A stretch of 64,000 nt of DNA from positions 8,754,962 through 8,818,961 of the forward strand of contig NC_134034.1 of the NCBI RefSeq assembly GCF_964204645.1. The letters run 5' to 3'. The translations under genes and the position numbers were made by a program. Position 1 is the stretch's first letter. The number at the start of each line of letters is the position of its first letter. This document shows positions 2,826-22,654 of this stretch, in pieces. Origin of the DNA: Tubulanus polymorphus (lineage: Eukaryota > Animalia > Nemertea). A model generated the notes under the pieces. That model made no database searches, was not told the origin of the DNA, and saw only the letters and a program-made list of their open reading frames with translations.

Positions 2826-3812
2826 TCACAAAATGTACAGAGGTAGTACCACTCTAAAAGTGTTACTAGGAATTGCCTATTACAGCTCTACAACTTTTGG
2901 AGTACAGCGATATTTGTTTGGTATCTTGCAAGTTTTCAGATTTGGTATGTGTCCGGTATGAACATTGTCAAATGCAGTAACCGTGAAAAAGTTGGTACCA
3001 TCTGGCATCTTTTACTAAATGGACCTTGATCACTTGTTGAGCTGATATTAGCTTTACACTTTCTAATTTAATTCTAAGTAACATTTTTTTATTTTATGAG
3101 ATTTCACTTCTAAGTATTGAAGTGAACTAAGTAAGAATTTTCTCATTTTGGTTATTTCGTCAGGCACATTCCTTGGACTATCATGATTTATCCTGATAGA
3201 TTTAGTTTATACAGTTATATACTAACGTGGTATTTTGTTAATTACAGTATTTGAATACAGAGAGGTATTAAAAAGTATTAAATCTTTTCGATCTCCACGA
3301 GAGATACACGTATACCCGGTCTCGGTTTAATGTTTTTGTTACGATAAAGCAATTGTTATATTGTTTTAATCAAACACAATGTGTTTAAAATTTAATAAAG
3401 TGTTTGTATCTTTTCTGATATCTTGTATTATGTGTATGGTTGATTCTTTTCTGCTTTGGAGGAAAATCATTTGATCCCACTGCTGTATTCCAGGAAAAGT
3501 CTAGGTTTGTTCTTCATGTGTTCTGAAAGTGGTCGATTCCTGTTCTGGATTTGTTCAGACCTAGAAGTGTTCCCGAAATATGTTCTGAAAAATCTGTTCA
3601 ATAGAAGTGTTCTTGATGTCATACAAATGTTCTCTCGTGTTCTAAATCTGGTGTTCTGGAGAAAAAGTGTTCTAAAATGTGTCCCATTTTATGTGTTCTA
3701 TTTTCGCGTTCTACGCGTTCCAAATATGTTTGTTGTTTTTAGAGTGTAGACTCGTTCAGAATTTGTATAAGACGATTAAGACTATTATTTGAATTTTAGT
3801 GACTTAGCAAAG

Positions 3813-4988
3813 ATGAGTACTCAATCAGTTAACGTGGATGGTGATCCGAGAGGTAGACCTTCGACTAGGAGTAACGCTCGTAGACAACCCCGAAGTCTTA
3901 GCGACGAGGCGTCGAAATCTCGAAGAGACGGGAATCTAACCCATCGTCAGCCCTTAGACGGAGAGACGACGGTCGTAGGAGATTCCCCAACCGTGACAGA
4001 AGTGGTGACCGCGCCTAATGCACTCGAGAAAGGCTCACAGGCTTTAGAGACGACAGCGCTTCCTCGTAGGGTTAGCTCCGGAGATCAGAATTTCATTTAT
4101 GCCGACCGTTTTGAGTCCAATGTCGAAACGAGTGATCGTCTTGACCGAGCTCCGTCGGGATCAAACTTTGGTTTCGAGAGTCAGCGCCTCACTCAAGACC
4201 GTAACCTGGCATGTAGAATCAAACCCGAAACCTTTGACGGCAATGGTCCCTGGCGAGATTATATCCAAGTTTTTGAGACAGTAGCACGTATCAACCGCTG
4301 GGACGATGGATCCAAGGCGGATTTTCTATTCGCACACCCTAGAGGTCCCGCCCGTCAATTAGCTTGCACTTTGTCGCATCAAAGTCGGCTTGATTATGGC
4401 GAGTTAGTCGGTATACTCGACTCGAGATTTGGTTCCGGCCATCAATCTGAACTCTTCTTAGCTGAAATTAAGAGTAGAAGGCGTAAGAGGACGGAAACCC
4501 TGAGAGAGCTGGGGCAAGAACTACTTTCCCTTGCCGTAAGGGCATATCCCGATTTAGACCCGTTTCAGCGAGACCGTTTAGTCCGAACACATTTTATAGA
4601 CGCGATCGAAGATAGAGAGCTGCGTATGCAATTGTACCAGAGTCATTGTAAATCGCTCGACGAGTTAGTCCGTCTAGCCGTAGAGTTAGAGGGGTTTAAG
4701 AGATTAGAGGAGGATAGAGAACGTGGATCTCATGGGTTCGTGAGAGCAACAAAAGTAGGAGAGAGCGACCAAATTGAGGCATTGAGATCTCAGGTGACTG
4801 AGTTGACGACAATGGTCAAGCAGTTAGTAGGCCTACAATCCCAACAGAGCGTTCGTCGAGATAATCATTCTATCATCTGTTACAGTTGTGGTCAAACAGG
4901 CCATATCTCTAGAAACTGCCGAGAAGGACCGAGACGGGGAAACGGGCGACCCCTGGCTCAAAGAGAGTCAAGCCAGAGGAGAGATTAA
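3813..4988 (+). CDS. gag: Gypsy Gag polyprotein
   Basis: Capsid motif KPETFDG..W..Y...FE..A..N.W and CCHC knuckle CYSCGQTGHISRNC. First ATG at 3813 within ORF 3789-4988. Confidence 0.95.
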   Translation: MSTQSVNVDGDPRGRPSTRSNARRQPRSLSDEASKSRRDGNLTHRQPLDGETTVVGDSPTVTEVVTAPNALEKGSQALETTALPRRVSSGDQNFIYADRFESNVETSDRLDRAPSGSNFGFESQRLTQDRNLACRIKPETFDGNGPWRDYIQVFETVARINRWDDGSKADFLFAHPRGPARQLACTLSHQSRLDYGELVGILDSRFGSGHQSELFLAEIKSRRRKRTETLRELGQELLSLAVRAYPDLDPFQRDRLVRTHFIDAIEDRELRMQLYQSHCKSLDELVRLAVELEGFKRLEEDRERGSHGFVRATKVGESDQIEALRSQVTELTTMVKQLVGLQSQQSVRRDNHSIICYSCGQTGHISRNCREGPRRGNGRPLAQRESSQRRD

Positions 4989-5001
4989 AAACCAAACTCT
5001 C
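4937..5001 (+). promoter_or_regulatory. -1 programmed ribosomal frameshift signal (G GGA AAC plus predicted H-type pseudoknot)
   Basis: Heptamer 4937-4943 is in X XXY YYZ phase with gag, and the -1 frame is open into pol. Stem 1 is CTGGCT/AGCCAG; stem 2 is GAGAGT (4963-4968)/ACTCTC (4996-5001). Confidence 0.8.
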
Positions 5002-5014
5002 ATCGCCAACCCTC

Positions 5015-8000
5015 TTGAATGAACGAGTTACTGTAAGCGCGATCAGCAACACGGTATCCAGCATAATCATCAGCGGAAAAATCGACAATGTACAAACCAA
5101 ATTTTTAATCGATACTGGTGCATGTGTTTCAGTTCTGAGTGAAGACGTGTTCGAGAAATTACACCCAGCATCGCAGGAGAATCTAGAAGAATCGAATTTA
5201 CAGCTATACAGTATCAATAATTCCCCTCTGAAAACATACGGTAAACTTGAGGTCGGAGTCGAGATTTTCGGCGAGGTCATGCCCTGGTCGTTCGCGGTAG
5301 CTGATATCGAAGATGAAGCCGTCTTAGGTTTAGATTTTCTTTCACACTACGACTGCCAGATTCACCCGGCCAGGCAAAGTATCACGTGTCATGGTGAGCA
5401 AATCATCTACGGAAAGAAATGTCAGCTAGATAAGAACAATACTCACGTCAGAAGCCGTCAGCGAGTCGTTATCCCCCCTTTTAGCGAAAAAGTGCTGGAA
5501 GGAACGACTGATGTACAACACCACTCCGGGAAGTGGGCTATGATAGAACCGTCTGAGTTTAGCCACAAACATCGATTTCTGACAGCGAGAAGTCTCGTCG
5601 ACACCGAAAAAATATGGTTACCCACCAGAGTTTTAAATCCTACACCACACAAGATTACGGTTTACAAGGGGACGACTCTTGGCTATTTGAGACCCGCATC
5701 TAGAGTAGAATCCAGTAATGTGAGAGCCACGCATACTCCCAGCCCTCCAAGCGGAGAGACTCCCGAATTTTTTAGAGATCTCGTCCAGAGAAGCACGAAA
5801 GACTTACAGCCAGACGAAGCATCTCAGGTCGAAAAGTTAATTTTAGAGTATCGAGACATCTTTGCTCGGTCCGACGCAGATTTAGGGGTAGCCCCGGGAA
5901 TTACGCACGATATACACACAGGGGATGCTAAGCCGGTTAGACAGAAGGCTCGACGCTTACCACCGGCAAGACAAGAGGTAGCCAGTCACCTAGTCAAAGA
6001 GATGCTAGATCGCGGGGTGGTTGAACCGTCAACTTCACCGTGGGCTAGTCCGATAGTTCTTGTGTCGAAGAAGGACGGGGGGATTAGATTTTGTGTAGAT
6101 TATCGGCGGGTGAATGACGTCACTATGAAAGATGCTTATCCCCTACCTAGAATTGATGACTCTATCCGTTCCCTTTCTGGCTCTCGATATTTTTGTACTA
6201 TGGATCTCGCATCTGGTTATTGGCAGGTCGAGCTGTCCGAATCTGCAAGAGAGAAATCCGCGTTTGTCATGAGAGATGGTCTATTTCAATTTCGCAAGAT
6301 GCCTTTTGGGTTGTGCAATAGTGGCGCGACGTTCGAAAGACTCATGGAACAGGTTCTCTGTGGCCTGCAGTATGAGATTTGCTTAGTCTATTTAGATGAT
6401 ATCATAGTATTCGGAAAGAATTTTGAAGAGACTTTGGGCAATCTACACCAAGTATTCGAAAGGCTTAGAAGGTTCGATCTAAAACTCAAACCCAAGAAGT
6501 GCCACTTCTTTGAGAAATCGGTTGCGTTTTTAGGACATGTAGTCTCAGAGGATGGCGTATCGTGCGACCCAGGTAAAATCGAATCAATTAAGACTTGGCC
6601 TGTACCTCGATGTCAAACTGACGTAAGATCATTTTTGGGTTTAGCATCTTACTACCGGAGTTTTTGCCGAGATTTCGCATCGACGGCGAAACCACTCCAC
6701 CGATTAACCGAGAAGGGAAGGAAATTTGAATGGTCTGGAGAATGTCAGTCCGCTTTTGAGGAATTGAAGGACGCGCTCATGACAGCGCCCATACTGGCAT
6801 ATCCACTCCCGGATACCCAGTTTATCTTAGATACCGACGCTAGTGGGGTAGGCTTGGGGGCTGTTTTGTCACAAGTACACGATGGGGCTGAGAAAGTGAT
6901 CGCCTATGGCAGTCGCACCTTGTCAAAGCAAGAACGAAATTATTGCGTCACGAGACGGGAGTTATTGGCAGTGGTCACATACGTCAAGCATTTCAGACAT
7001 TATTTGTTAGGGAGAGAGTTTCTGCTCCGCACCGACCACGGTTCGCTACGCTGGCTCATGTCTTTTAAAGACCCAGAGGGACAGACGGCCCGGTGGATTA
7101 CACTTTTGTCAGAATACAACTTCAAGGTTCAACATCGTCCCGGCCGTCTTCACACTAACGCAGATGCTTTGAGTCGCAGGGAATGTCAACATTGCTTGAG
7201 GGCTTCTGAGAGGTATGAAACAATCGAGAGTCCATGCAGCCACATCAAGCGGGTGAGAGCTATCAGAGACTGTTCCACTGAATTATTGTGCGCGCCAAAA
7301 TGGTCGCCAACAGAACTAGGCCAAGCACAAGCAAGCGACCCTGATTTGAGATGGATTGTAGAGCGATATAAGTCCCAAGATCGACCAAGCTGGCAGGATG
7401 TCGTAAGTGAGGGCGCTACCAGCAAATTTCTAGCAACCCGGTGGGAACAATTAAAATTGGTCGAGGGCGTACTGTATATCACCAAGGAAAGAGAAGGGTT
7501 AGAACCGTCTGCGTTGTTAGTTTTGCCTAAAACTTACCGTCACGAAGTATTCATCGAGATTCATGCCTCTAGAACCGCCGGACACTTTGGCTACAAGAAA
7601 ACTCTCACTAGCATTCACCAAAGATATTTCTGGCCCGAAATTCGGGATGATGTCAAGCTCTGGTGTGCGACTTGTTACCTATGTGCCACCAGGAAGAGTC
7701 CACCTAGAAGTAATAAAGCAAAACTTAAAGACTATCGCGTTGGCCTACCTATGGAAAGAATAGCTTTAGATATTTTGGGGCCCCTACCCGAAACGAAAGC
7801 CGGGAACACAGTAATTTTAGTCGTCTCCGATTATTTTACTCGTTGGGTGGAGGCCTACCCTCTACCAAATCAGGAAGCCAAGACTATAGCAGCAACACTC
7901 GTCCGAGAATTCATAAGTAGATTTGGTGTAGCGAGACAATTTCACTCTGATCAAGGGTCTAATTTCCAGTCAAAATTGATGACCGAAATTTGCGGCATGC

Positions 8001-8722
8001 TAGAAATGCGTAAGACTAGAACTACCGCCTATCACCCGCAGTCCGATGGATTAGTTGAGCGATACAATCGCACCCTGTTGAATGGGCTCGCCATGGTTGT
8101 GAATAAAAACCAGGACGACTGGGACGAGCAGCTACCATTTTTAACGATGGCGTACCGAGCGTCAACACATGATTCAACTGGATTTTCTCCAAACTATTTA
8201 ATGCTAGGCCGGGATATAAACTTACCTATAGATATTCTCTCGGGAACTCCCCATCCTTCGATACAGCTCCCAGTTGAGACGTACGCAACGGAACTGAAGG
8301 AACGCCTTACTTTCGCTTTTTCTCACACCCGAAAGAACTTAGCGCTTCGTGCTAGAAGAAATAAAAGACATTATGATACTCGTAGTCACGGAACGAATTA
8401 CAAAGTCGGGGAACGGGTATGGCTTTTCCGACCTGTCACGCCTGGCATGAAGTCATCAAAGCTGGCCTGTCATTGGGTAGGCCCATGTGAGATTTTCAAG
8501 ATAATAAACGACGTAGTATATACTATAGCGCTTCCTAATTCGAACAAGCGTATGACCGTGCATTTCGACCGACTGAAACCCTACCTTGAGCCAACCGCAA
8601 CTGACCTGAGGACTCCTGACTATCCAGAGAAATACTCAGACGAAATCAAAAGCGACGATTTTAGAACCACTTTTTTCGGGCGTACATCGAGACCACCTGA
8701 TAGATATGGCGACTGGTGCTAG
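5015..8722 (+). CDS. pol: Gypsy Pol (protease, RT, RNase H, integrase), intact, in -1 frame to gag
   Basis: LIDTGA protease; YLDD RT; TDAS...RELLA...TDH RNase H; HHCC zinc finger, DDE core and GPY/F-like integrase. 1235 aa uninterrupted. Confidence 0.98.
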   Translation: MNERVTVSAISNTVSSIIISGKIDNVQTKFLIDTGACVSVLSEDVFEKLHPASQENLEESNLQLYSINNSPLKTYGKLEVGVEIFGEVMPWSFAVADIEDEAVLGLDFLSHYDCQIHPARQSITCHGEQIIYGKKCQLDKNNTHVRSRQRVVIPPFSEKVLEGTTDVQHHSGKWAMIEPSEFSHKHRFLTARSLVDTEKIWLPTRVLNPTPHKITVYKGTTLGYLRPASRVESSNVRATHTPSPPSGETPEFFRDLVQRSTKDLQPDEASQVEKLILEYRDIFARSDADLGVAPGITHDIHTGDAKPVRQKARRLPPARQEVASHLVKEMLDRGVVEPSTSPWASPIVLVSKKDGGIRFCVDYRRVNDVTMKDAYPLPRIDDSIRSLSGSRYFCTMDLASGYWQVELSESAREKSAFVMRDGLFQFRKMPFGLCNSGATFERLMEQVLCGLQYEICLVYLDDIIVFGKNFEETLGNLHQVFERLRRFDLKLKPKKCHFFEKSVAFLGHVVSEDGVSCDPGKIESIKTWPVPRCQTDVRSFLGLASYYRSFCRDFASTAKPLHRLTEKGRKFEWSGECQSAFEELKDALMTAPILAYPLPDTQFILDTDASGVGLGAVLSQVHDGAEKVIAYGSRTLSKQERNYCVTRRELLAVVTYVKHFRHYLLGREFLLRTDHGSLRWLMSFKDPEGQTARWITLLSEYNFKVQHRPGRLHTNADALSRRECQHCLRASERYETIESPCSHIKRVRAIRDCSTELLCAPKWSPTELGQAQASDPDLRWIVERYKSQDRPSWQDVVSEGATSKFLATRWEQLKLVEGVLYITKEREGLEPSALLVLPKTYRHEVFIEIHASRTAGHFGYKKTLTSIHQRYFWPEIRDDVKLWCATCYLCATRKSPPRSNKAKLKDYRVGLPMERIALDILGPLPETKAGNTVILVVSDYFTRWVEAYPLPNQEAKTIAATLVREFISRFGVARQFHSDQGSNFQSKLMTEICGMLEMRKTRTTAYHPQSDGLVERYNRTLLNGLAMVVNKNQDDWDEQLPFLTMAYRASTHDSTGFSPNYLMLGRDINLPIDILSGTPHPSIQLPVETYATELKERLTFAFSHTRKNLALRARRNKRHYDTRSHGTNYKVGERVWLFRPVTPGMKSSKLACHWVGPCEIFKIINDVVYTIALPNSNKRMTVHFDRLKPYLEPTATDLRTPDYPEKYSDEIKSDDFRTTFFGRTSRPPDRYGDWC

Positions 8723-8781
8723 TCCAGATGTCATCTGCCATCGTAATTTTCATGTTTTTTTTTTATCCTTCTATTTTATAG

Positions 8782-10003
8782 GGATAAAACGACCAAGGTT
8801 AAGTGTATTTATTGTGCGCGTAGAGTCGACAAGGAAAACGTTCACGCGCATAATAGGTATTGCGAAGGCCGGACCCGCGAGGGGAAAGTCTTCGAGTGTG
8901 AAAAGTGCGGTAAACAGTTCGCTACCAAACTGAAGGCCCGTGGGCACGTAAAGTACCATGATGAGAGGGTGCGTATCCTCGAGGTCGCGGAAGATTCATG
9001 GGACCGAGACCCGCCTGCACATGTCCTATCCGCGTCAAACGTTACCTCTACTGTGAGCGCGGTGTCCGCCAAAAGAAAATTTCGACGTGACGAGCAGCGG
9101 CGTAAGCGCGCAGAAGAATCGAAAGCGAGATTGGATCGACAGCGGGAGCGAGAAGTGATCGACGAGACGGCAGAGCAGTTAGCGGCTCAAATCAATAAGA
9201 TATTAGAAGAAGATGAGCCGGTCACTGGCGACGCTCGAACGGTCCACTTTGGTACGCCATCCCATACCGCTACTTCAACTAGAGAACAAGAGATGGACGT
9301 CACTCCCGTCAGCTGTCAATCGGAAGGGAGATCGGCTTCCGACGTCGTCACCCGAATCATGAAAGAGATGTCGGGCACCATAGATGAGGTTTATCCGCCT
9401 TCGATCGTCACAGAGAAATTCCCAGCCGCCATCAGCGATGATCTGCCGACTTCTGCAGGCGATAAATTACCAACCGTCGTCGAGAGCCTGCCAATCGAGC
9501 CGCCTACTACTGCTATGAAGACACCAGTAATTCAGTCTCCGACTTCCGTCGTCAAGTTGTCAACGGAGTCGCTGCCAGCAGTTGCGCAAGAATCCTCGTC
9601 CGAGCCGTCAGTCGAGATAGAAAAAGATAAGTCGAAGCTGGAAGATGTCATAGTCGACGAGTCATCAGAGAGTTGCCAGGCCAACGACGCGGGTTCAGCA
9701 TTGTGCGAACAAATGGTCCTGCTACACAGTCATCCTGTTCCTGGTCGCAATGCGTATAAATATTTCGGTTCTCCATGCGACAGAGCAGTATGCAACCAGT
9801 GCGTTGTCGAATCCTTGAGGTTCAAGATTCGGTGGCCGACTCCAGAGTTCGTTCGACATGTGGAGGTGACGCGACCTACGGCATTCGGGATGCTACACAG
9901 CCACCCTACCGCGGCCGGAGATGTAGAAATCTATGGGTTCAGCAACGAACCAGTAACATGCGCGTTGTGTCTGATCGACCAGAAGGTGTTTGGCATCGTA
10001 TGA
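8782..10003 (+). CDS. Gypsy ORF3, probably spliced: two N-terminal zinc fingers, coiled coil, two C-terminal HSHP...CxxC repeats
   Basis: The frame of ORF 8969-10003 stays open back to a strong acceptor (poly-T...TATTTTATAG/8782). The extension reads CIYC..HAHNRYC and FECEKCGKQFATKLKARGHVKYH. Confidence 0.7.
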
Positions 10004-10398: not shown

Positions 10399-11232
10399 GT
10401 CGCCGTTTATGACTATCTTCTAGTTAAACTTTTATCGGCCGACTGAGAGCGTCACCGATCAAAATATTTCGTCGAGCAAGCTTGTGTACATATTCGTTAT
10501 CTACCCGCCGGGTGCTTCGATTTTTTAGATTATTTACTTGCCGACTTGATTCGCTCTCGGTCGGGCGATTTAAATGTAAATAAATGTATATATATATATA
10601 ACATAATCCGAGCGATGATTTGAGATCGTCGTTAGCACCTTTCGAGTCTCGTACTGTACGCCCGAATGAGACATGCATTTTTGACGCGACCACGACGCGA
10701 GACTTTTTCGAGACGCGCCGCGAACTAAGAGACTTTAAAGATATGCTGTTAATTTTATTGACTTAGTGACATTAAATTTGAGAGTCCACGGACTCTTATC
10801 TTATGACGATTTATATAAGTCTTATATCTTCGTCTTTTCTGAACGAGGAGAGGAGTTCCGCCGCTATTTTTCATAATGGTGCGGTTTCTGACATTTTCTC
10901 AATTTCCGGAATCATTTAGAAATTTCCGGAAAAATCTAAGGAGGGGTCTTACAATTTAAACAAATAATTCCAGAATTTTCCGGAAAATTCTAGAAATCTC
11001 ATTATCGCAGGGGGGTCAAATGGAATTCCGAAAAAAAATAAATTCCGGATTTTTCTGGAAATTTCCGGAAATCTCATTCCAAAAATCGTGTACAGTGAAT
11101 AATGTTATAAGGATTTTGATCCGTTACCACGGAAATTAACTAATTTATTTAGGGAACAGTCATTTGTTGCGTAGTAACACAACGACTTTTATCATCGAAC
11201 ATAAAAAGCTGATCCCATTCAATCATTTCAAC

Positions 11233-14200
11233 ATGGAATCTAGATTAGCTTATTTAAATAAATGTTGGGAGAAAGAAATACGCTGGAATGTTTTCCCAAC
11301 GAAGCTGGAAGAGGTAAGTAAACTTTAGCCAACCATATCAAATACTTAAGGCCTGCATTTAGCAACAGAATTAATTCGTAATTCATGCACCTTTTCCATA
11401 ACATATGCTATTTCCTTGCATCGTATGGATATTTAGCTCAATGGCTATGTATGCCGCACTATTGTCTACATTATGCAGTTGGAATAGGTCTATTTAATGA
11501 ATATGTAGTGGAAGTCGTTAACCATTTCACCGTTTGAAATGACGTAAATGTGTCCCTGTAGAGGCCTCTTATTTGTCTGTTGATACCAACACAGAGTCCG
11601 CCTGTATTACCCGTCGCGTCAAAGAGATTACCATTATTTCATACAAAATTGTTCTTCGGTTTTCTAGTTAGGCTAAGCCTATTTCATAACAACAATAATT
11701 TAAATCGCGGAAATAGTCATCATTAATATCGTCAACATGGTTGGCCTATAGATCTAAGGCTAGGTCTAGGCCTAATTATTGATTAGATTTTTTAGTCAGT
11801 AGACTTCCTAACAGCCCTGGTAACCTATAATTTTTCTCAAAACCATGCCCTGCATGACTCAAAAACACCCCGCTCCAGGAATTTGAAAATTTAACCCTTG
11901 TCATTGAATAGCTAGGATATCATTTACAAGAAATTGAGCAATAAATTTCTAGGGTATAAATCATAAAAAAATACATTTCTTCCATATTCAAGTCAATGAA
12001 TATTTAACCTTTTTCTCGTGAATTTAGGAATGCGGTTGAGCCCTAGGCCTAACCTCTGAACAAAGTATAACAGTATTAGAATAATATTTTATGAAGTTCA
12101 TTTCATTATAGGCCTAGGCCTATAACAAAAAGTAATTCTAAAAAAATGATTCTATTTTATTTTGTTGCAGGGTTGTAAATTTCTTGCAGATAAGATGAAC
12201 GTACCCGATTCGTCAGTACTTTTTGGGTTATTAGGCATATCATCATATATATGTAGTAACGCGATCGTCAAAGTTTCAAACACCATGTGGGAAGAACCGG
12301 CTATCAACTGGCTTGCCGTTTGCACCCCGACTGGGTCAGGGAAGTCAACAGTGTATAGGCTGATGAGTAAAGTACTAAAAATGATCAAAAACAAGGTGGA
12401 AGAGTCAAAACCAGACGTTAAATCTGTTATCTGGACATTAGACGATCAAAGTTTTGAAAAAATGGGCGCCTTGATGGCCGAAAACAACGGAAAAGCATTT
12501 GCCCTACAAGATGAATTAACAAATTTCTTAACGCAAATAAACATATACAGCGGAAGCAAGGGATTGTTAGAAACAAACGAATTTTCAAGAATATTACAAA
12601 TGTATAACGGTAATTCCTGGACAAGGAAAACGGGTAAGGTCATTTCTGGATTCATCCAAATAATTTAGGCCTATTCACTGCAGGTTCAATTCAATAAATA
12701 AGATAAACCATATAAAAGTTAAATCATACTTGTGTCCGGACCAGTCCAGATCGCGGCAACAAGTCAATAGTCGTCACCTCTCAGTGTCCAGGCCAGGGAA
12801 GCTGCCACCTATTAAAGTCATTGAACATAATCAAAACACATGAGCCCACTAGTAACCATTTGTCTATTGATATACAAAATTTACTAACAACAAGAACATT
12901 GGCTACGCCAATTTTGTAGACACCCACCGGTTGTATTGTTAGAAATTCTCATTTTTAACATAAACATGCTCAACATAAAAGATAATAATGCCGGTATCTA
13001 TTTTACAGTTGGTGAAAAAGCTAATTTTACAATGGAAACCACCGGCCTATCGATATTTAGGATGACACAGCCAAGTACGGCATATTCATTAATAACGGAG
13101 AAGCAAAATATTGACAAAGGTCTCACATCAAGATTTCTTTGGTTATTTCCTAAGCCGAAATTCAACACATTCGAAGATTTAAAGTGTACGGACGATGATA
13201 CCGGAGATGTCTTCATTGAGCGTTTATGTAAGTAAATAGATAGTTGCCGGTTTTATGAAATGTTGCTATGAGACGGGAAACGGGTCAGTTTAATGTTCTG
13301 ATTCGTGACTGATGTTGGTCACTTGTTCATCATCGCACAAAACGTGTTTTGGAGCGGAATATCGTGAATTGCTAAATCGTTGAAATAGTTCAATTAGTTT
13401 TCATTATATTTTTTGAAAATTCTAAATTAACTCTTTACTTGGAAGTGTATTTTTACGTATTGAAAGTAAAAAATTTGTTTTTTATTAAGATCATTATATG
13501 TTTTTATTCTAGTCCTAAAAAGTACCTCCTATATTTTTCAAATTTTTGATTTATAAATGTTTCACTAAATGTAGGCGAGGCATTCAGTAAACAAGTACTG
13601 CACAACGGTGACAATGATGTGACCTTGTACAGAATAGACACAGATACAGATAACGAAGTTTCGGACATTTATGATAAATTTCAACAAAAATTGAAATCGA
13701 ATTGTTTGGCCAACAACCTGCTAAGTGGTGAGTTTAAATCTAATAAATTATATTATAGTTATATTTTAGTAGCGAGGAGTACTTTCAAGTCTTCAGGTAT
13801 TTCCAGCTGTTGAAAACAAAGAAAATAACAAATTCACCTACTTGCAAATGATAATGTCATAGCAAATTAATCAGCAAGTGTTCTATACGATTTGAATATT
13901 GATCATACTTTACGGTTTAACATATTACCACAAAATCATTAAAGAAAAATTAATTTGATATTGCTTTCATATTAACAGCGCTTTACTCAAAAGGCAAGGG
14001 ACAGGTACTTCGTCTTTGCCCAGCGATACAACTACTATTCAACATCTTCTATGACGGTGATGATGAACAGCTTGATCACGAGAGGAACACAATCAGATCA
14101 GAAGTGATCAGGGCTTCGGTAGAAATTGTTTCGCTATGCATTGACCATGTCGCGACTGTGGTGGGAATGGAAAATGATTCGCCGCCAGTCTTAATCCCGG

Positions 14201-15565
14201 ATGGTAAGATACGTTACTTAGATAAACGCAATAACAGTTCCTCACAAGTCACCTTGGACTTTTCTGAGTGATGTAACATTATGTCGACGATGCACTCGGG
14301 ACTACTCCACATGGACGGTCAAAAAATTTAAGACGTAGGCTACATCAAACCCTGGCTGTAGAAAAGGTACCTCGTCCTAATCGATAGAACTATTGACACT
14401 AACTTGCCTTATTGAGAATATGCTTATCCCGGGCAATCGGTCAATCGGATCCTGTAACAGTGTCCTGAACTTAAATCACGTTTGGCGTATACTGGCCTTC
14501 ATTCCGGAGTAGATTTTGTGTAATTGAAGAAGCGTAGTAGGTTGTACAAATTGAAGCTTCATTATTAAAAATGACTGTAAAACATACGATGGTAAATGAT
14601 TATCAATTATGAAAACGCACGTATTTGTTGTTTTTTTAAACTACTAGATTAATGGTAAAAGTGTAACTTTCACTAATAGATTATCAACCGGTAGAATAAT
14701 GTAAAATATGTTATATTTGTACAGGTATATAGGTATACAGGCTAGCCTTATCGGCTTTTGAATAAAAGCAAAAATTAATTTCGACAGTCATCCTAATATA
14801 ATGTCTTGATAAAAATAATTATGTTAGAATAATTATGTTTACGCGGAATTCCACGGTACCGCAACATAAAATGGGAGCTATAGGCCTACATGATAACTAG
14901 AGGGATATAAAGATGTGCATTTCCCGAGAAAAACCACTATTTTTCATTTTTGGTCTCATAATAGAAAGATTATAAGATTTTTAGATTGAGTTTTCCGGGA
15001 AAATCCAGATTTTGTTTTTGTGCTTTTCATTTGTACACGCATCGACTATTTCGTATACGTCAAACAATTATCTAAATATTGTTTTACTAAAGGTATCACC
15101 GAAACGAACCAACGACTCATGAAAATTGTCATATTAAATCAAGGGAGAGAGGTATTCATGAGTGCGATGCAAAAGAAGTCGGCATTCAAAGTAAATGGGG
15201 GGAAGAATAAGATTAAAGAAATATTCCAAATGCTTGAGAACCGAAATGCCGGCACCATAAACATTGCTACTGATAAGGTAGGCATTTTAAACAATTCTTA
15301 GTTCTAGGCAAAAAATATTCTTTCAGTTTGTCGCGTGATATACAAACACAATATATTTGTATACATGGGTCCATTAAAATATTTATGACCCTTTCATTCC
15401 TCTCTGTGCATATATATTGATATACAATTATGATTGATCTCTTTTCAGATAAGTTTTCTCAAAACTGAAAACATAGAAGATGAGATGTTAACTTCGTTGA
15501 AAGTGACAAGATCAGAGTTTGTTAACAGCTTGTCAGCATCAAAAGTGCCTTTGGAACAACAGTAA
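11233..15565 (+). CDS. Seven-exon DUF3987/YfjI-like P-loop NTPase, ~480 aa (exons 11233-11313, 12171-12633, 13009-13227, 13575-13727, 13979-14203, 15093-15277, 15449-15565)
   Basis: All junctions are GT-AG and phase-compatible, giving 1443 nt with no stop. Walker A PTGSGKS, Walker B ALQDE, LQMYNG..W.R.T, TQP, GLTSRFL and SK.KGQVLRL motifs match the DUF3987 pattern. Winged-helix-like C-terminus is inferred. Confidence 0.8.
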
Positions 15566-16198
15566 GTGTATCTGTTTATATATTTGCCCATCCGAATATA
15601 ATTACCGGTACACATTAGAATTTAAACTGAAGTAACTTATCCACTTACCATTTCTTGAAAATATCTCAAAAGTATATCCTTATTTACATCGTAACATTAC
15701 AATGGGAATATATATATTTTCATTGGAGCTATGATTTAAGTTTATATTCACATCTATTTTCGTGTCAACTACATCTTTAATCCCAGAGAAGACGTTTGAA
15801 ATTGGTTTTAGCGGGATTAGCTTTGTAACCCCCCCCCCCCCCCCCCTATTAGACAGTTTACAGTTCAATATTTCAGAAACTATAAGGAAATACTATATTC
15901 GGAAAAAGTAATGCCGGGTATTAACTCCTTCATTAATGTTGGGCTGAAATGAGACAAACATCAGCTAAAATAACCTATAATGAGCAAATCTCATTGCTGT
16001 GATTACAACATAACATAACATGTTACTAGTTCTGTATAATACAACATTTTTCTATCAAATTTCATGTCTCAAGCTTCAATAAAACGACCATTGGAATATG
16101 TAGCCAAAAGCTTTGAAAAATCTCCTCGTTTATACTAATATCTTTATCAGTTTAGAAAAGTAATAAACATACGGTGTGAAGCGCGTTTTACACATGTT

Positions 16199-19100
16199 TT
16201 ATACAAGTTTTAATCTTTTTTCAAGTCTCTCGTTAAAGTCATTATTAATCAAGTTGAAAAATAATTTCCTTTTATTCCTGGTCATGTATCTAGTTGCCGC
16301 TTTGTATCGATTCAATCGAACGAAACCCTGTTCGCAACTTTCTGTATTCGTGCCGGCGATATCTTGAAATGCATCTAAATTAGGATGGTATTTACATTGA
16401 GGCCCATCGAGAGGCATGCATGTAGGCTTCGTGTGTTTCACAACATGGAAAATATCCACCAAAAACTTGGTGTTCTCCAACAATTCGGATGCTTCAACAA
16501 CACCGTCTTTGGCTAGTCGGCACAAAAATGGATGCAACTCACAGCAACGATCATAACCGACGTATCTCAAGTAATCTTTATATCCATTTCTCACATATGT
16601 TTCATGTAAGAAAAGGAAAGCCTGTGTTATACTTTCATGCGAAAACATCTCAACCATTCTGACGACGATTCCACAAGGTTTTATCGCAGCAAACATACCG
16701 GCAGTAGTAGAGTAAAACTTATTCAATTTCTGTACTCTATCTTTGCATCCTAATTCAGCGACGGATTCATCCACAAGTAACATATTTCGCGCACGTTTAA
16801 CATCGTGTACATAATCTGTAAACAATATCGATTTCGTTACTATATGAATCGCAACGAAAGAAATAAAACCCTGTTTACAGGGTCAGAATCATTGTTTAAA
16901 GTAAATCCCTGACATTGACCATAACCATACTGGGGGTATAGTTAAACGTAGGGTCAGAGAGGGTCATAGGATCATAGGGTTGTTGTGTCAGGGAAGGTAA
17001 TAGGGTTATATTGTCAATAGCGTTGGAGCATAAGAGAGGGTTCTTGTGTTCGAGAGTGTCACATGTTCAGTATCATTACATGGTCAGTGAAGTCATAGGA
17101 TTAGTATTGTCATTAGAGGGTTACTAGAGGACTGAAATATTAAATATGTTCTTAGGTTGTATTGAATTAACCTTGAATTTATATTTATATACATGCAAAC
17201 ATTTAAATATATTCTTTAATAGTAACAGATTGTAATTAAAAATATAAATCAAAAACATCTTGAATTGTCGCTGACCCTATGAGTATAAACCTAGCGTTAA
17301 TTTTCATGTACCTTTGAGATATAATGGAATCCGCGTCTGTCTTTCAGGTCGTTTTGTATGGTCGTCTTTATTGGGTTTGTCTGTCAGCTTTTTCTCTTCC
17401 ATTGGTCTATGTTCGTTACAGAACCTATTGATATTAAGTAACTTTAAATTAACAGGTATACGTTTTGCTGATGTTTTCAATGATAGGGCAACCTAAATGT
17501 ACGAGCATGTTATAGCCTACGCCCGTAAATAAACTATCATCGAGAATTCATCGTAAGAGTTGAAGTGATCAGAGCTGACACCTACCTTGACGAGGGTTTG
17601 TGTTTCCCGCCATAAGAAGGGTCATTCTGACATGTTATGATTGTTCTGATTGAGTTTGTATCGTCAAAATGTACTTGGCTATCCGCTGCACACATTGCCC
17701 GATGAAGCTTTTCATTGCCATCGATAGTGACGTACCCCTCCCTACACCCCTTCGTTTCGCACACATGTTTAATCCACTTTCGTTCTTTTTCTTCAAATAC
17801 CTTTAATATAACGAGTACCGGACTGCTAAGCTTATTTTAAAATTAGATCGCAAAGAATCGCGTTATTGTCTGCGATTCTATATAAACAAAGCAACGAACT
17901 ATTTATTTCCCATTATATTAGAGGAGTGGTGTTTGGGGGTTAGGCTTTAGAGCGTTAGGTTTCATATGGTTAGGGTTTACGGGGTTAGGGGTTTAGTTTT
18001 TAAAGGGTTAAATTTTATAGATTTAGGTTTTAAAGGGTTTGGGTTTAGAGTGTTCAGGGGTTTAGTGTTTAGGTTTTAGGGGTTTAGGGGTTAGGGTTTA
18101 GGGGGTTAGGGTTTAGTGTTTAGAGGGTTAGGGTTAAGAGGGTTAGGGTTTAGGGGGTTTAGTGTTCAAAGGGTTAGAGAGAAATTAGAGGGTTCAGGGT
18201 TTAGAGAGTTAGAGGGTTAGGGTTTAGTGGTTTTTAGGGTTTAGGGTTTACGGGGTTAGGGTTTAGGGGGCTAGGGTTTAGGGGGTTAGGGTTTAGTGTT
18301 TAGAGGGTTAGGGTTTAGTGTTAAGAGGGTTAGTGTTCAGAGGGTTAGTGTTTAGAGGGTTAAGGTTTAGTGTTTAAAGGGTTAGGGTTTACGGGGTTAG
18401 GTTTTAGAGGGTTAGGGTTTAGGGGGCTAGGGTTTAGTGTTAAGAGGGTTAGGGTTTAGTGTTCAGAGGGTAAGTGTTTAGAGGGTTAGGGTTTAGTGTT
18501 TAGAGGTTTAGGTTTAAGAGGGTTAGGGTTTTGGGGGCTAGGATTTAGTGTTTAGAGGGTTAGGGTTGAATGATTAGAGGGTTAGGGTTTAGTGTTTAGA
18601 GGTTTAGGTTTTAGAGGGTTAGGTTTTAGGGGGCTAGGGTTTAGTGTTTAAAGGGTTAGGTTTTAGTGATTAGAGGGTTAGGGTTTAGTGTTTAGAGGTT
18701 TAGTGTTTATAGGGTTTAGAGGGTTAGGGTTTACGGGGTTAGGTTTTAGAGGGTTAGGGTTTAGGGTTTACGGGGTTAGGGGGTTAGGGTTAGGGTTTAG
18801 TGATTAGAGGGTTAGGGTTTAGGGGGCTAGGGCTTAGGGGGCTAGGGTTTAGTGTTCAGGGATTAGAGAGTTAGATTTTAGCGGATTTTAGTGTTCAGAG
18901 GGTTAGGGTTTAGGGGGTTAGGGTTTAGTGTTTAGCGGGTTAGGTTTCAATGGGGGTTTAGGGATAAGGTTTTAGAGAGAATTTAGAGGGTTTAGTGTTT
19001 ATAGGGTTAGGTTTTAGAGGGTTTAGGGTTTACAGGGTTAGGTTTTAGAGGTTTAGGGTTTACGGGATTAGGGGTTTAGGTTTTAGAGGGTTAGGTTTTA

Positions 19101-21055
19101 GGGGGCTAGGGTTTAGTGTTTAGAGGGTTAGGGTTTAGTGATTAGAGGGTTAGGGTTTAGTGTTTAGAGGTTTAGGTTTTAGAGGGTTAGGGTTTAGAGG
19201 CTAGGGTTTAGTGTTTAGAGGGTTAGGGTTTAGTGATTAGAGGGTTAGGGTTTAGGGGTTTAGGTTTTAGATGGTTAGGGTTTAGTGTTTAGCGGGTTAG
19301 GTTTCAATGGGGGTTTAGGGATAAGGTTTTAGAGAGAATTTAGAGGGTTCAGTGTTTATAGGGTTAGGTTTTAGAGGGTTTAGGGTTTCCGGGGTTAGGT
19401 TTTAGAGGGTTAGGGTTTAGGGTTTACGGGGTTAGGGGTTTAGGTTTTAGAGGGTTAGGGTTTAGGGGCCTAAGGTTTAGGGGACTAGGGTTTAGTGTTA
19501 AGAGGGTTAGGGTTTAGTGTTTAGAGGTTTAGGTTTTAGAGGGTTAGGGTTTAGGGGGCTAGGGTTTAGTGTTTAGAGGGTTAGGGTTGAGTGATTAGAG
19601 GGTTAAGGTTTAGGGGTAAGTGTGTAGGGGGTTAGTGTTTAGTGTTTAGAGGGTAGGGGTTTACGTGGTTAAGTGCTTAGGGTTCAGTGTTTATAGGGTT
19701 AGGTTTTAGAGGTTTAGTATTTAGAGGGTTAGGGTTTAGTGTTTATAGGGTTAGGTTTTAGAGGGTTTGGGTTTAGGGTTTACGGGGTTAGGTTTTAGAG
19801 GGTTAGGGTTTAGGGGGCTAGGGCTTAGGGGGCTAGGGTTTAGTGTTCAGGGATTAGAGAGTTAGATTTTAGCGGGTTTTAGTGTTCAGAGGGTTAGGGT
19901 TTAGGGGGTTAGGGTTTAGTGTTTAGCGGGTTAGGTTTCAATGGGGGTTTAGGGATAAGGTTTTAGAGAGAATTTAGAGGGTTTAGTGTTTAGAGAGTTA
20001 CGGTTAGGTTTATTTTGGTGGGTGTTTATGCTTGAGAGTACCATAGCTTATTAGGTTAGGGTTTAGATGGTTAGAATCCTAGTTCGTTCATGTTATGTGG
20101 GTTTCTTATAAGTATATGTAATGTTAACATGGACTCAATGTGAAATGTAGCATGATATCAGTAGCCTATATCTTTCTTGTCAACATTGAGGAACAATTTT
20201 CAAAGACTCACCGGCCACGCTTGTTTGCAAATTGCATCTAAATCGATGTGTCCATTCTTTAAGTATTTGAAATTTGATATTGGCGTCTTCAGGTTTGGGT
20301 AGTTCAGTTTTGATTCCCTAGTTATTCTGTACAAAAACCACGCTTCTTCGAGTCTGAGTTCATTCAGGTACCAATTTATCGAATCATCTTGACCATCACT
20401 TGTAGGAGTACGCGAAAAGACCGATGAACAGTGCAGTCTTGTTTTGTTCGCATTTTCGTGTTCTTCGTTGTAGGCGTCCGCGAGCGCTTTGAAAGAGGCC
20501 CCGAAATGATTTATCGAGACGGAAACATGTTCAAGATAATCAATTGAAAACGCGGTTTGAGATGTTGATAGAAAATAGGTTTCGTTTGGATTTTCATAAT
20601 CCAGAAAACGAAGCCGCTATGTGAACTCCGGTTTTCGTAAATACATGTGGAAAAGACGGTTCATTTCTCAAAGTTATTTTTCGATCGCAAAACAAACACA
20701 TCTGTAACGGCGGCATTAGCACGATTGGTTTAAATCCATCTCTTCTGGATGACACAGTCCCATAAATTATATCTTTGTGAATAGTCTCCATCCTAAGTAT
20801 ATCCGGATATTGTTGACTAATGACCCCATAAAGATCACGGCAGCACATTTCATTTTTTTCGAATGTCCTAACAGATGAAAAGCGACTACTGTTTGCTACC
20901 ATTATATACGTTCTATTCGTCTCATCGTTTGAAATGTCCTCAGAAGCTCCAAGATATGTACAAAAATGCTTCCATCGATTTGGCATACATTTAGGGAAAA
21001 GCTCTGATGCTTTCAAAAAAGAACACAGTTCTCCGAGACGTAAATAAAACGCCAT
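16199..21055 (-). pseudogene. Spliced KDZ (Kyakuja/Dileera/Zisupton-like) transposase with CxC5/CxC6-like domains (exons 21055-20212, 17800-17586, 17424-17312, 16815-16199); frameshift/deletion near 20597
   Basis: Motifs TIDGNEK..R..C, C...FC..H, G.FAAIKPCG, ES, GYDRCC, LVDIFH..KH...C and NTESCEQ.F..LN. Exon phases are compatible. Exon 1 switches frame after AASFSG and resumes YENPNETYFLSTSQTAF...SF.ALADAYN. Confidence 0.8.
17925..20075 (+). repeat. ~2.1-kb degenerate telomere-like (TTAGGG/TTTAGGG/TTAGAGGG/TTTAGTG) minisatellite inside transposase intron 1
   Basis: Directly visible, with longer internal blocks repeated (e.g. TTTCAATGGGGGTTTAGGGATAAGG three times). Confidence 0.95.
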
Positions 21056-21109
21056 TTTATCAATTTATATTCACACAAAACGGTAAAACTTTGTTATGGT
21101 ATCCAGGTG

Positions 21110-21910
21110 ACCATTTATTCTGGAACGATCCGGAAATTTCTGGAAAAGCAATTCTAATTTATTCTGGAACGATCCGGAAATTCTGGAAAAATAATTCTGA
21201 TTTTTCCGGAATTCCGCGGTACCCCCCCCCCTCCGTGCCGATCAGCTTTCTGGATAGATCCGGAAATTTCTGGAAAAGCAATTCTAATTTATTCTGGAAC
21301 GATCCGGAAATTTCTGGAAAAATAATTCTGATTTTTCCGGAATTCCGCGGTACCCCCCCCCCCTCCGTGCCGGTCAGCTTTCTGGATAGATCCGGAAATT
21401 TCTGGAAAAGCAATTCTAATTTATTCTGGAACGATCCGGAAATTTCTGGAAAAATAATTCTGATTTTTCCGGAATTCCGCGGTACCCCCCCCCCCCTCCG
21501 TGCCGGTCAGCTTTCTGGATAGATCCGGAAATTTCTGGAAAAGCAATTCTAATTTATTCTGGAACGATCCGGAAATTTCTGGAAAAATAATTCTGATTTT
21601 TCCGGAATTCCGCGGTACCCCCCCCCCCGAGACGTAAATAAAACGCCATTTTATCAATTTATATTCACACAAAACGGTAAAACTTTGTTATGGTATCCAG
21701 GTGACCATTTATTCTGGAACAATCCGGAAATTTCTGGAAAAGCAATTCTAATTTATTCTGGAACGATCCGGAGATTTCTGGAAAAATAATTCCGATTTTC
21801 CGGAATTCCGCGGCATCCCCTCCTCCGTGCCGTTACGAGATCAGCTTTCTGGATAGATCCGGAAATTTCTGGAAAAGCAATTCTAATTTATTCTGGAACG
21901 ATCCGGAAAT
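21110..21910. repeat. Subterminal tandem array (~132-bp unit rich in TTCCGGAA/TTCTGGAA), including a duplication of the transposase start region
   Basis: Unit recurs at ~21229, 21361 and 21494. 21034-21230 is repeated at ~21627-21830. Confidence 0.9.
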
Positions 21911-22654
21911 AGTCAGAAAAAACGATAGTAAAGTATGAAAAATGTCAGAAACCGCACCAATCTCCTATTTTTCACCTCAGTGCCAATCTATTATTATTCG
22001 TCTTTATGAGAGGACCAGTTCGATCAGGGACGTGTCAGCAGTAGTAAGATGGAGACCATCAATCGAGGATCCGAACCCGCAGTCCTTTATTGACTGATGG
22101 CCTTCATCCGGGGGTAGTCATGACAGAGTGTCATACGTAGAGAACGGTAGATGTTGGAGAGAACTAGGTTCGAACCCGAGCGAAATCCTGGCCAGGTAGT
22201 CGCCTACTTGGATGCTGAGCCCTGATCATGGAATGAGAAGGATGAATATTTATTTGACGATAATTTAGATAAGAATTTATATCTTTTCCCTGAGGAGGAA
22301 TTACTTCCCCCAATATTTTCGTATCACCCGATTATATTGTTTCAGGGCGAACCCTAGTAGCAAACGCCTATTTTACTTATCCAACCCTATAAAGAAACAC
22401 GCTACCCAGGAGAGAAACGCTACACCATCTTAACGCTCTCGTCGCTGTAATAGTATGTCTATCTATTAATTGATGAGACCTGTTTTTCTGGGATATTTTG
22501 CTTACTTTTTGGGGAACATACCTCATTTATGTCTTAACAGAATGCCAAAAATCGCGGACAACAACTGAATATCCGATATATTTCCAGTTCTGTACCAATT
22601 AGATGGATTGGCAAAAAGACTCCTTAAGTCCAGTTGAATGAGAGAGAAAATCCT

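Follow-up and report, generated by a model that had tools for sequence, protein, structure and literature searches.

Cut-and-paste DNA transposons of eukaryotes are, in the usual description, elements with a single gene, or elements in which a transposase is accompanied by a helper that binds DNA. An AAA+ partner with a gene of its own is a hallmark of prokaryotic systems such as Tn7, Mu and IS21. In the present study, we analysed a stretch of 64,000 nucleotides from the nemertean Tubulanus polymorphus (RefSeq assembly GCF_964204645.1, contig NC_134034.1, positions 8,754,962 to 8,818,961 of the forward strand), hereafter called the window, whose own numbering is used for all coordinates given without a contig or locus name. 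Within it, an element of 11,093 bp (10872-21964) with a KDZ transposase gene encloses a second gene, for an MCM-like ATPase of the DUF3987 family. What appears to be new is a Zisupton/KDZ transposon whose second gene encodes an MCM-like helicase; KDZ elements and DUF3987 helicases are each already known.

DUF3987 has been described as a superfamily 6 (SF6) helicase family which is related to MCM and has a winged helix-turn-helix at its C-terminus (PMC4889955), and one bacterial member, a PriCT-DUF3987 protein, forms oligomers and acts as a 5'-3' helicase in dependence on Walker A and Walker B (PMC11724360). Zisupton elements make target site duplications (TSDs) of 8 bp (PMC12730594). The DUF3987 literature that we found concerns prokaryotes or phages only. 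We found no paper pairing KDZ/Zisupton elements with an MCM-like helicase, and an earlier mention in Iyer et al. 2014 or Bohne et al. 2012 is not excluded.

Results

In the preliminary description of the window, the span from 11233 to 15565 had been read as an intact gene of seven GT-AG exons that splice into a stop-free protein of 480 aa with Walker A/B, TQP and SRF motifs. The model was rebuilt from the sequence and its exons were searched one by one; full-length analyses were carried out on the proteins of sister copies of the element, P0001 (XP_074641217.1) and P0152 (XP_074645867.1). The seven exons stand as they had been placed. Their coding sum is 1443 nt, giving 480 aa and a stop, all introns are GT...AG, every exon is open in frame, the phases 0,1,1,1,1,0 fit, and none of the four split codons (V, C, A, G) is a stop. 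The word intact does not hold, since the family gene has eight exons and the copy in the window has lost an acceptor and carries a Gly>Arg change at 13059.

All exons lie on the plus strand. Exon 1 (11233-11313) runs from an ATG start to a GT donor and encodes 27 aa; it matches the profile of the family alignment A1 with an E-value of 6.8e-10, and its peptide is kept in the Oculina protein P0153 and in P0140. Exon 2 (12171-12633) carries Walker A (GSGKS) and Walker B (QDE), and exon 3 (13009-13227) carries the sensor-1-like TQP and the arginine-finger-like SRF, so that all the motifs named earlier are present; their Pfam DUF3987 matches have E-values of 4.8e-11 and 4.5e-5, respectively. Exon 4 (13575-13727) and exon 6 (15093-15277), with which the C-terminal domain begins, were placed by frame, splice sites and A1 profile positions 260-323 and 426-488, respectively. 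Exon 5 (13979-14203) encodes the lid helices with an invariant, sensor-2-like Arg (VLRL) and gives a weak Pfam DUF3987 match. Exon 7 (15449-15565) ends in a stop at 15563-65 which overlaps the intron 7 donor, CA/GTAAGT. Exon 8 of the family gene corresponds to 16066-16138, where 24 codons and a stop match the C-terminus of P0152. In full, the family gene has eight exons and seven introns and encodes 503 aa.

The assignment to DUF3987, which had been made from the letters of the window, was borne out by profile searches. P0001, which is 99% identical to the protein of the window, scores 101.1 bits on PF13148 against a cut-off of 27, and the matches on exons 2, 3 and 5 are colinear on the profile (positions 5-69, 192-235 and 314-362). 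Furthermore, the RefSeq models P0001 and P0152 have the same junctions as the model of the window. P0152 has only 495 aa because its RefSeq model takes an alternative donor and thereby drops eight conserved residues. As judged from the sequence, the locus is a genuine spliced gene of the DUF3987 family.

P0001 also matches PHROG 2373, annotated as DNA helicase, with an E-value of 2.7e-24 and an alignment that reaches residue 433. In addition to Walker A (GSGKS) and the Walker B motif ALQDE, in which G82, K85, D141 and E142 are invariant in an alignment of eight sequences, the T and P of TQP and the lid arginine R317 are invariant in the family alignment. The SRF arginine is kept in most family members and in a distant paralogue that is linked to a Merlin-type transposase. 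The ATPase motifs are thus preserved across homologues of about 22-30% identity.

An AlphaFold2 model of the sister-copy protein was built on an alignment of 54 sequences. Its mean predicted local distance difference test score (pLDDT) is 70.6 and its predicted template modelling score (pTM) is 0.71, and residues 1-370 are confident. All matches listed by Foldseek are MCM helicases, with E-values of about 1e-4. When model residues 22-372 were aligned with MCM ATPase domains by VIA-align, 258-289 residues were superposed with Z scores of 16.6-18.3, a root-mean-square deviation of 3.5-4 and sequence identities of 9-15%. P0001 has no Pfam match to the MCM family PF00493 at E<=0.1, and a search of solved structures by sequence gave a best E-value of 0.47. 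The aligned MCM-type core starts at residue about 22, which leaves no space for the MCM N-terminal OB/zinc domain. Because this domain is missing and there is no Pfam MCM match, the protein is MCM-like and not an MCM. In the model, residues about 22-372 are an MCM-type AAA+ ATPase core, and SRF would occupy the arginine-finger position and xQP the sensor-1 position of that core. The ring-helicase reading offered in the preliminary description is therefore supported by the fold, with MCM as the best match at a Z score of 18, and by the DUF3987 papers (PMC4889955, PMC11724360).

The gene lies inside a transposon with well-defined ends. The left terminus (10872-10897) contains a perfect 21-nt terminal inverted repeat (TIR) at 10877-10897, which is 100% complementary to its partner at 21939-21959 in the right terminus (21939-21964), and the element is flanked by the 8-bp TSD CTATTTTT at 10864-10871 and 21965-21972. 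Five copies of the element, about 99% identical, were found in the genome, four of them with different flanks. Homology among the copies begins at the same base (10871/2 on the left), and the terminus is the same in all. The copy C2a has its own 8-bp TSD, GTTTATTG, and no obvious common target was seen between the two insertion sites with the TSDs CTATTTTT and GTTTATTG. The copies C2a and C2b (C2:16471500-16486000 and C2:16495000-16509500) are 23 kb apart and share the left flank and a premature stop in exon 7; they are therefore a segmental duplication and not two insertions. In one of them, intron 2 is interrupted by about 2.4 kb of inserted sequence. By these structural features, the carrier is a Zisupton/KDZ-type cut-and-paste transposon that has multiplied recently in Tubulanus polymorphus.

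The transposase gene runs on the minus strand from roughly 21055 to 16199 and is convergent with the helicase gene. Its last exon (16199-16882) encodes the catalytic KDZ domain (PF18758, E-values 1.6e-11 and 2e-11, 44.5-44.8 bits against a cut-off of 26.6); this exon was found at the same five genomic places and, additionally, in a paralogue of 62% identity. A cysteine-rich exon (17585-17836, minus strand) is homologous to an exon of the KDZ gene of Exaiptasia (L014:5305-5505) and to sequences in the contigs L027 and L029. The N-terminal exons (20203-21064, minus strand) comprise the open frames 20597-21064 and 20203-20616, which are 47% and 41% identical to the paralogue on C4, and the region gives a weak match to L029. 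The large intron of the transposase gene holds about 2 kb of telomere-like repeats (17937-19935; TTAGGG/TTTAGGG variants found by TRF, GC skew 0.89), which occur in the other element copies with variable length. The element holds only these two genes, for the helicase and the KDZ transposase, and no primase, polymerase or origin-binding gene was found in its 11.1 kb. The helicase gene is present in every copy of this KDZ family.

Both ends of the element carry subterminal repeats. On the left (10900-11090) these are TTCCGGAAAT-type motifs, with many inverted matches to a right array at 21118-21867; on the right (21118-21628) a 132-bp unit is repeated 3.9 times with 98% matches (TRF). The repeats on the left are possible binding sites of the transposase. 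Outside the left TSD, a Gypsy-type long terminal repeat retroelement (3789-10003) adjoins the KDZ element; it has a gag zinc knuckle, a pol of 1235 aa (protease, reverse transcriptase (RT), RNase H and integrase) and a third open reading frame (ORF) of 344 aa.

The helicase gene of the window carries two changes that the other copies do not have. The intron 7 acceptor (16064-16065, plus strand) is AT in this copy and AG in the four others, and a contig of the sequencing run X1 has G at 16065. Because the last acceptor has been lost (AG>AT), the copy of the window stops inside a retained intron 7; the 480-aa product is possible only with that retention, and exon 8 is probably not spliced in from this copy. 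Moreover, the codon at 13059 is AGG in the window and GGG in every other copy, and contigs of X1 and X2 carry G there too. The glycine that is changed (G199) lies two residues ahead of TQP and is invariant in alignment A1. With both changes, the copy of the window is probably crippled. Other copies carry changes of their own: C2a and C2b have a TTG>TAG premature stop in exon 7, at the equivalent of 15531, and a fifth copy has a deletion within exon 2. There are 15 distinct differences among the copies, ten of them nonsynonymous (including two nonsense) and five synonymous, and identity is alike for exons and introns, about 99%. The differences look about as expected for neutrally decaying transposon copies, so that the comparison of nonsynonymous and synonymous changes which had been proposed as a check could be made and was uninformative on function.

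Homologues of the gene were found well beyond the nemertean. An exhaustive HMMER search with exon 2 gave 362 of 1.84 billion representative proteins at E<=1e-3. The best match was P0001 itself, annotated as an uncharacterized protein of Tubulanus polymorphus, with P0152 and one fragment in the same cluster. The ten match clusters that were examined consist of animal RefSeq/GenBank proteins or ENA/JGI/Logan contigs, and none is named as bacterial. A word-index protein search with P0001 and alignment A1 gave almost no matches. The JGI contig L015 was tried as an mRNA and rejected, as its ORF is directly preceded by a stop and an acceptor-like site (TTTTAG) and lies downstream of AT-rich sequence; the contig resembles genomic DNA of an intron-poor lineage.

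A long residence of the gene in eukaryotes, which had been proposed from the number of its introns, is supported by these homologues and by the introns themselves. Introns 2, 3 and 4 lie at the same alignment columns in the homologue of the sea anemone Exaiptasia (P0134, locus L014) and are in phase 1 in both, so that exon 4 is flanked on both sides by introns common to the two animals. A profile scan put the break between exons 2 and 3 at profile position about 180 in the window, in L014 and in the contigs L017, L027 and L028.

The association with KDZ transposases is likewise shared. The Exaiptasia homologue adjoins a gene with CxC5 and KDZ domains. In four ENA contigs (L029, L027, L028 and L017), KDZ-type exons lie upstream of the DUF3987-like gene on the opposite strand; these exons are homologous to the Exaiptasia transposase and match the Tubulanus transposase weakly. 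Three of the four (L017, L027 and L028) also have the exon 2/3 intron. The linkage of helicase and KDZ transposase thus holds in Nemertea, in Cnidaria and in four ENA contigs despite a change in gene order. An incidental capture in a single element copy, which the preliminary description had allowed for, does not describe this gene, which is in all five copies and is KDZ-linked in other taxa. From the shared introns and the linkage, we read the gene as an old, conserved transposon partner and not as an incidental capture.

Two side observations concern these loci. In the Exaiptasia sequence (LJWW01000101.1), a 63-nt inverted pair (L014:25-87 and 19596-19658) is 89% complementary, with more colinear inverted matches, and three genes lie between its arms, namely those for KDZ and DUF3987 and one other; the pair is possibly the ends of a 19.6-kb element, and the 8 bp adjoining its two ends differ. 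In L028:1-7339 and L027:4050-8569, the KDZ-like exons and the DUF3987-like gene are separated or flanked by transposase ORFs of piggyBac type or Tc5/pogo type, or by an RT-bearing element, which suggests nested insertions in old copies.

In the Tubulanus genome, PF13148 matches about 15 further loci. The gene lineage of the KDZ-linked helicase was found nowhere in the genome outside the element copies. A second lineage lies in a 4.7-kb repeat (L026:708-5406, that is G000:C6:23002207-23006905, and also at C9:2124132, C4:11674071 and C7:18147617) whose copies are 99% identical. This repeat has an intronless DUF3987 gene, with an ORF of 464 aa (L026:2788-4182, plus strand), head-to-head with an IS1595/Merlin-type transposase ORF (L026:1468-2271, minus strand). 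The Merlin-linked DUF3987 protein is 18% identical to the KDZ-linked one. The KDZ paralogue on C4 (C4:17721851-17723882, L018/L019) is a compact gene that is 62% identical in its catalytic exon and lacks the array of telomere-like repeats in an intron; a Walker-A-exon fragment of a DUF3987-like gene lies 5.6 kb upstream of it and a sub-threshold Pfam match 0.8 kb downstream.

Discussion

In the present study, we propose that the protein assembles into an ATP-driven ring, which would act as a helicase or translocase on transposon DNA and assist the DDE transposase. Ring assembly is suggested by the arginine finger, which, if it acts in trans, presupposes an oligomer. The steps at which such a motor might serve are the opening or remodelling of DNA at the ends or the target, and the support of repair synthesis after excision or integration. 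We consider this role as a DNA-directed helper of the transposase to be the probable one, because two unrelated transposases have the same kind of partner and the relative that has been tested is a helicase. As the KDZ and Merlin transposases are unrelated, the service is probably directed to DNA and not specific to one transposase.

Several observations weigh against this proposal. DUF3987 helicase activity has been demonstrated only for the bacterial PriCT-DUF3987 protein and for no eukaryotic member (PMC11724360). In the full model, pLDDT falls to about 30-57 after residue 372, the C-terminal domain folded alone reaches 41.7, and this domain, a putative winged helix, has no Pfam match. The contigs of four sequencing runs that align on 10870-16400 (5,531 letters) span the introns and no splice joints were seen in them; splicing is therefore neither directly supported nor directly contradicted. 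The differences among the copies are about neutral, and the recent copies therefore carry no selection signal. The gene order is tail-to-tail in Tubulanus and head-to-head elsewhere, and the Desmophyllum locus L016 has no KDZ within 10 kb. Finally, the KDZ paralogue on C4 has only a fragment of the Walker-A exon nearby, and other KDZ families of the genome have no DUF3987 match in their neighbourhood (C2:16360582, C8:2544095, C6:11058925, C12:8555215, C4:6656898, C11:10867420 and C4:13758800). Therefore, some KDZ elements can do without the helicase, and the partner is lineage-specific within KDZ.

Other explanations were weighed against the DNA-directed helper. The protein might be an AAA+ regulator or target selector without unwinding activity, that is, an oligomer that binds target DNA and activates or directs the transposase as TnsC, MuB and IstB do. 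The same arrangement of an AAA+ gene beside a DDE transposase in one TIR-bounded element speaks for it, as does the persistence of the partnership across taxa. We nevertheless hold this role to be unlikely: the structural matches listed are all MCM helicases and none is IstB/DnaC-, MuB- or TnsC-like, no Pfam match to the IstB/DnaC, MuB or TnsC families was obtained at E<=0.1, the sole DUF3987 protein tested is a helicase (PMC11724360), and the insertion sites with the TSDs CTATTTTT and GTTTATTG have no obvious shared target.

A bolder form of the helicase proposal is that animal DDE transposons of at least two unrelated superfamilies, KDZ/Zisupton and Merlin, each took up a ring helicase which is MCM-like and descends from phages or mobile elements, and which couples their transposition to replication. 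The helicase might then drive unwinding for copy-out or for strand-displacement synthesis of the element. We regard this as a rather unlikely course of events; if true, a DDE transposon of eukaryotes would possess a replicative motor of its own.

It seems somewhat less likely still that the protein is simply a replicative helicase, which would serve together with host primase and polymerase to copy the element, either replicatively or in an extrachromosomal form after excision. For the DUF3987 proteins of phages and bacterial mobile elements, a role as replicative helicase is shown or predicted, usually with a primase alongside (PMC4889955, PMC5862659, PMC11724360), and the replicative MCM has the same fold. 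However, the element has two genes only, with no primase, polymerase or origin-binding gene among them, its TIRs and 8-bp TSD are a classic cut-and-paste structure, its copy number is low (5 places), and the MCM N-terminal domain used in double-hexamer loading is absent.

The idea of a passenger gene, captured without any role in transposition or serving the element otherwise, for example against host silencing, is to our mind just as doubtful as a replicative helicase. Its linkage to KDZ lasts across Nemertea, Cnidaria and four ENA contigs despite the changed gene order, its ATPase motifs have been kept among homologues of about 22-30% identity, and a distant DUF3987 lineage pairs with a second, unrelated transposase type, Merlin. 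These points have to be set against the cargo carried by fungal KDZ elements, such as TET/JBP (PMC12730594), the KDZ families of the genome that are without the gene, and the neutral evolution of the copies. That the locus is explained by open frames arisen by chance, or by a host gene of single copy that happens to adjoin a transposon, is very improbable: no spliced RNA was seen in the four run contig sets that span the introns, but the Pfam matches are colinear, the RefSeq junctions are identical, introns are common to a cnidarian, and the gene lies inside the TIR/TSD bounds in every copy while its lineage is nowhere else in the genome.

With the helper of the transposase as our preferred reading, an intron-bearing MCM-like helicase together with KDZ across animal phyla, and a distant relative together with Merlin, suggest that DNA transposition in animals has an accessory function which has gone unrecognised. 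They raise the question of whether a ring helicase aids a DDE transposase, and at which step. Moreover, such genes are listed in RefSeq under the name 'uncharacterized protein LOC...', with consequences for gene counts and for the annotation of transposons in the genomes of marine invertebrates.

When compared with known systems, the protein is related to the bacterial and phage DUF3987 helicases, namely AgaPH (PriCT-DUF3987) and the phage SF6 helicases (Kazlauskas et al. 2016), by the same Pfam and PHROG 2373 families, and these too have Walker A/B, carriage on mobile elements and a C-terminal extension after the AAA+ core. Unlike them, the Tubulanus gene is eukaryotic, has seven introns, lacks both PriCT and an adjacent primase, and is partnered by a DDE transposase and not by an integrase or primase module; the similarity is at the profile level only. 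MCM2-7 and archaeal MCM have an ATPase core with a fold like that of the Tubulanus protein (Z 18.3 over about 270-290 residues), whereas the Tubulanus gene is single and not a set of six paralogues, is transposon-borne and encodes no N-terminal OB/zinc domain. Tn7, Mu and IS21 likewise unite, within one element, a DDE transposase and an oligomeric AAA+ ATPase that has its own gene (TnsC, MuB and IstB, respectively). These three ATPases belong to another AAA+ clade, to which no Pfam match was found at E<=0.1 and none among the structural matches listed; they are regulators and target selectors and not helicases, and the likeness of the Tubulanus element is in genetic arrangement only.

Among eukaryotic DNA transposons, Helitron (Rep and a Pif1-like helicase) and AcademH have their own helicase. 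Their helicases belong to superfamilies 1 and 2 and not to the ring-forming AAA+/SF6 enzymes, and Helitron uses an HUH nuclease and not a DDE transposase. The Zisupton/KDZ elements, including the fungal ones with TET/JBP, share the KDZ domain, TIRs, an 8-bp TSD and a second co-mobilised gene (PMC12730594); unlike in the fungal elements, the second gene in Tubulanus is for an MCM-like ATPase and not a dioxygenase, and the host is an animal. The Merlin (IS1595-type) unit L026 of the same genome is likewise a two-gene combination of a DDE transposase and a DUF3987 ATPase, present in several copies that are about 99% identical. Unlike the KDZ element, its transposase is of an unrelated superfamily and its DUF3987 gene, for a protein of 18% identity, is intronless and head-to-head with the transposase gene in a 4.7-kb unit.

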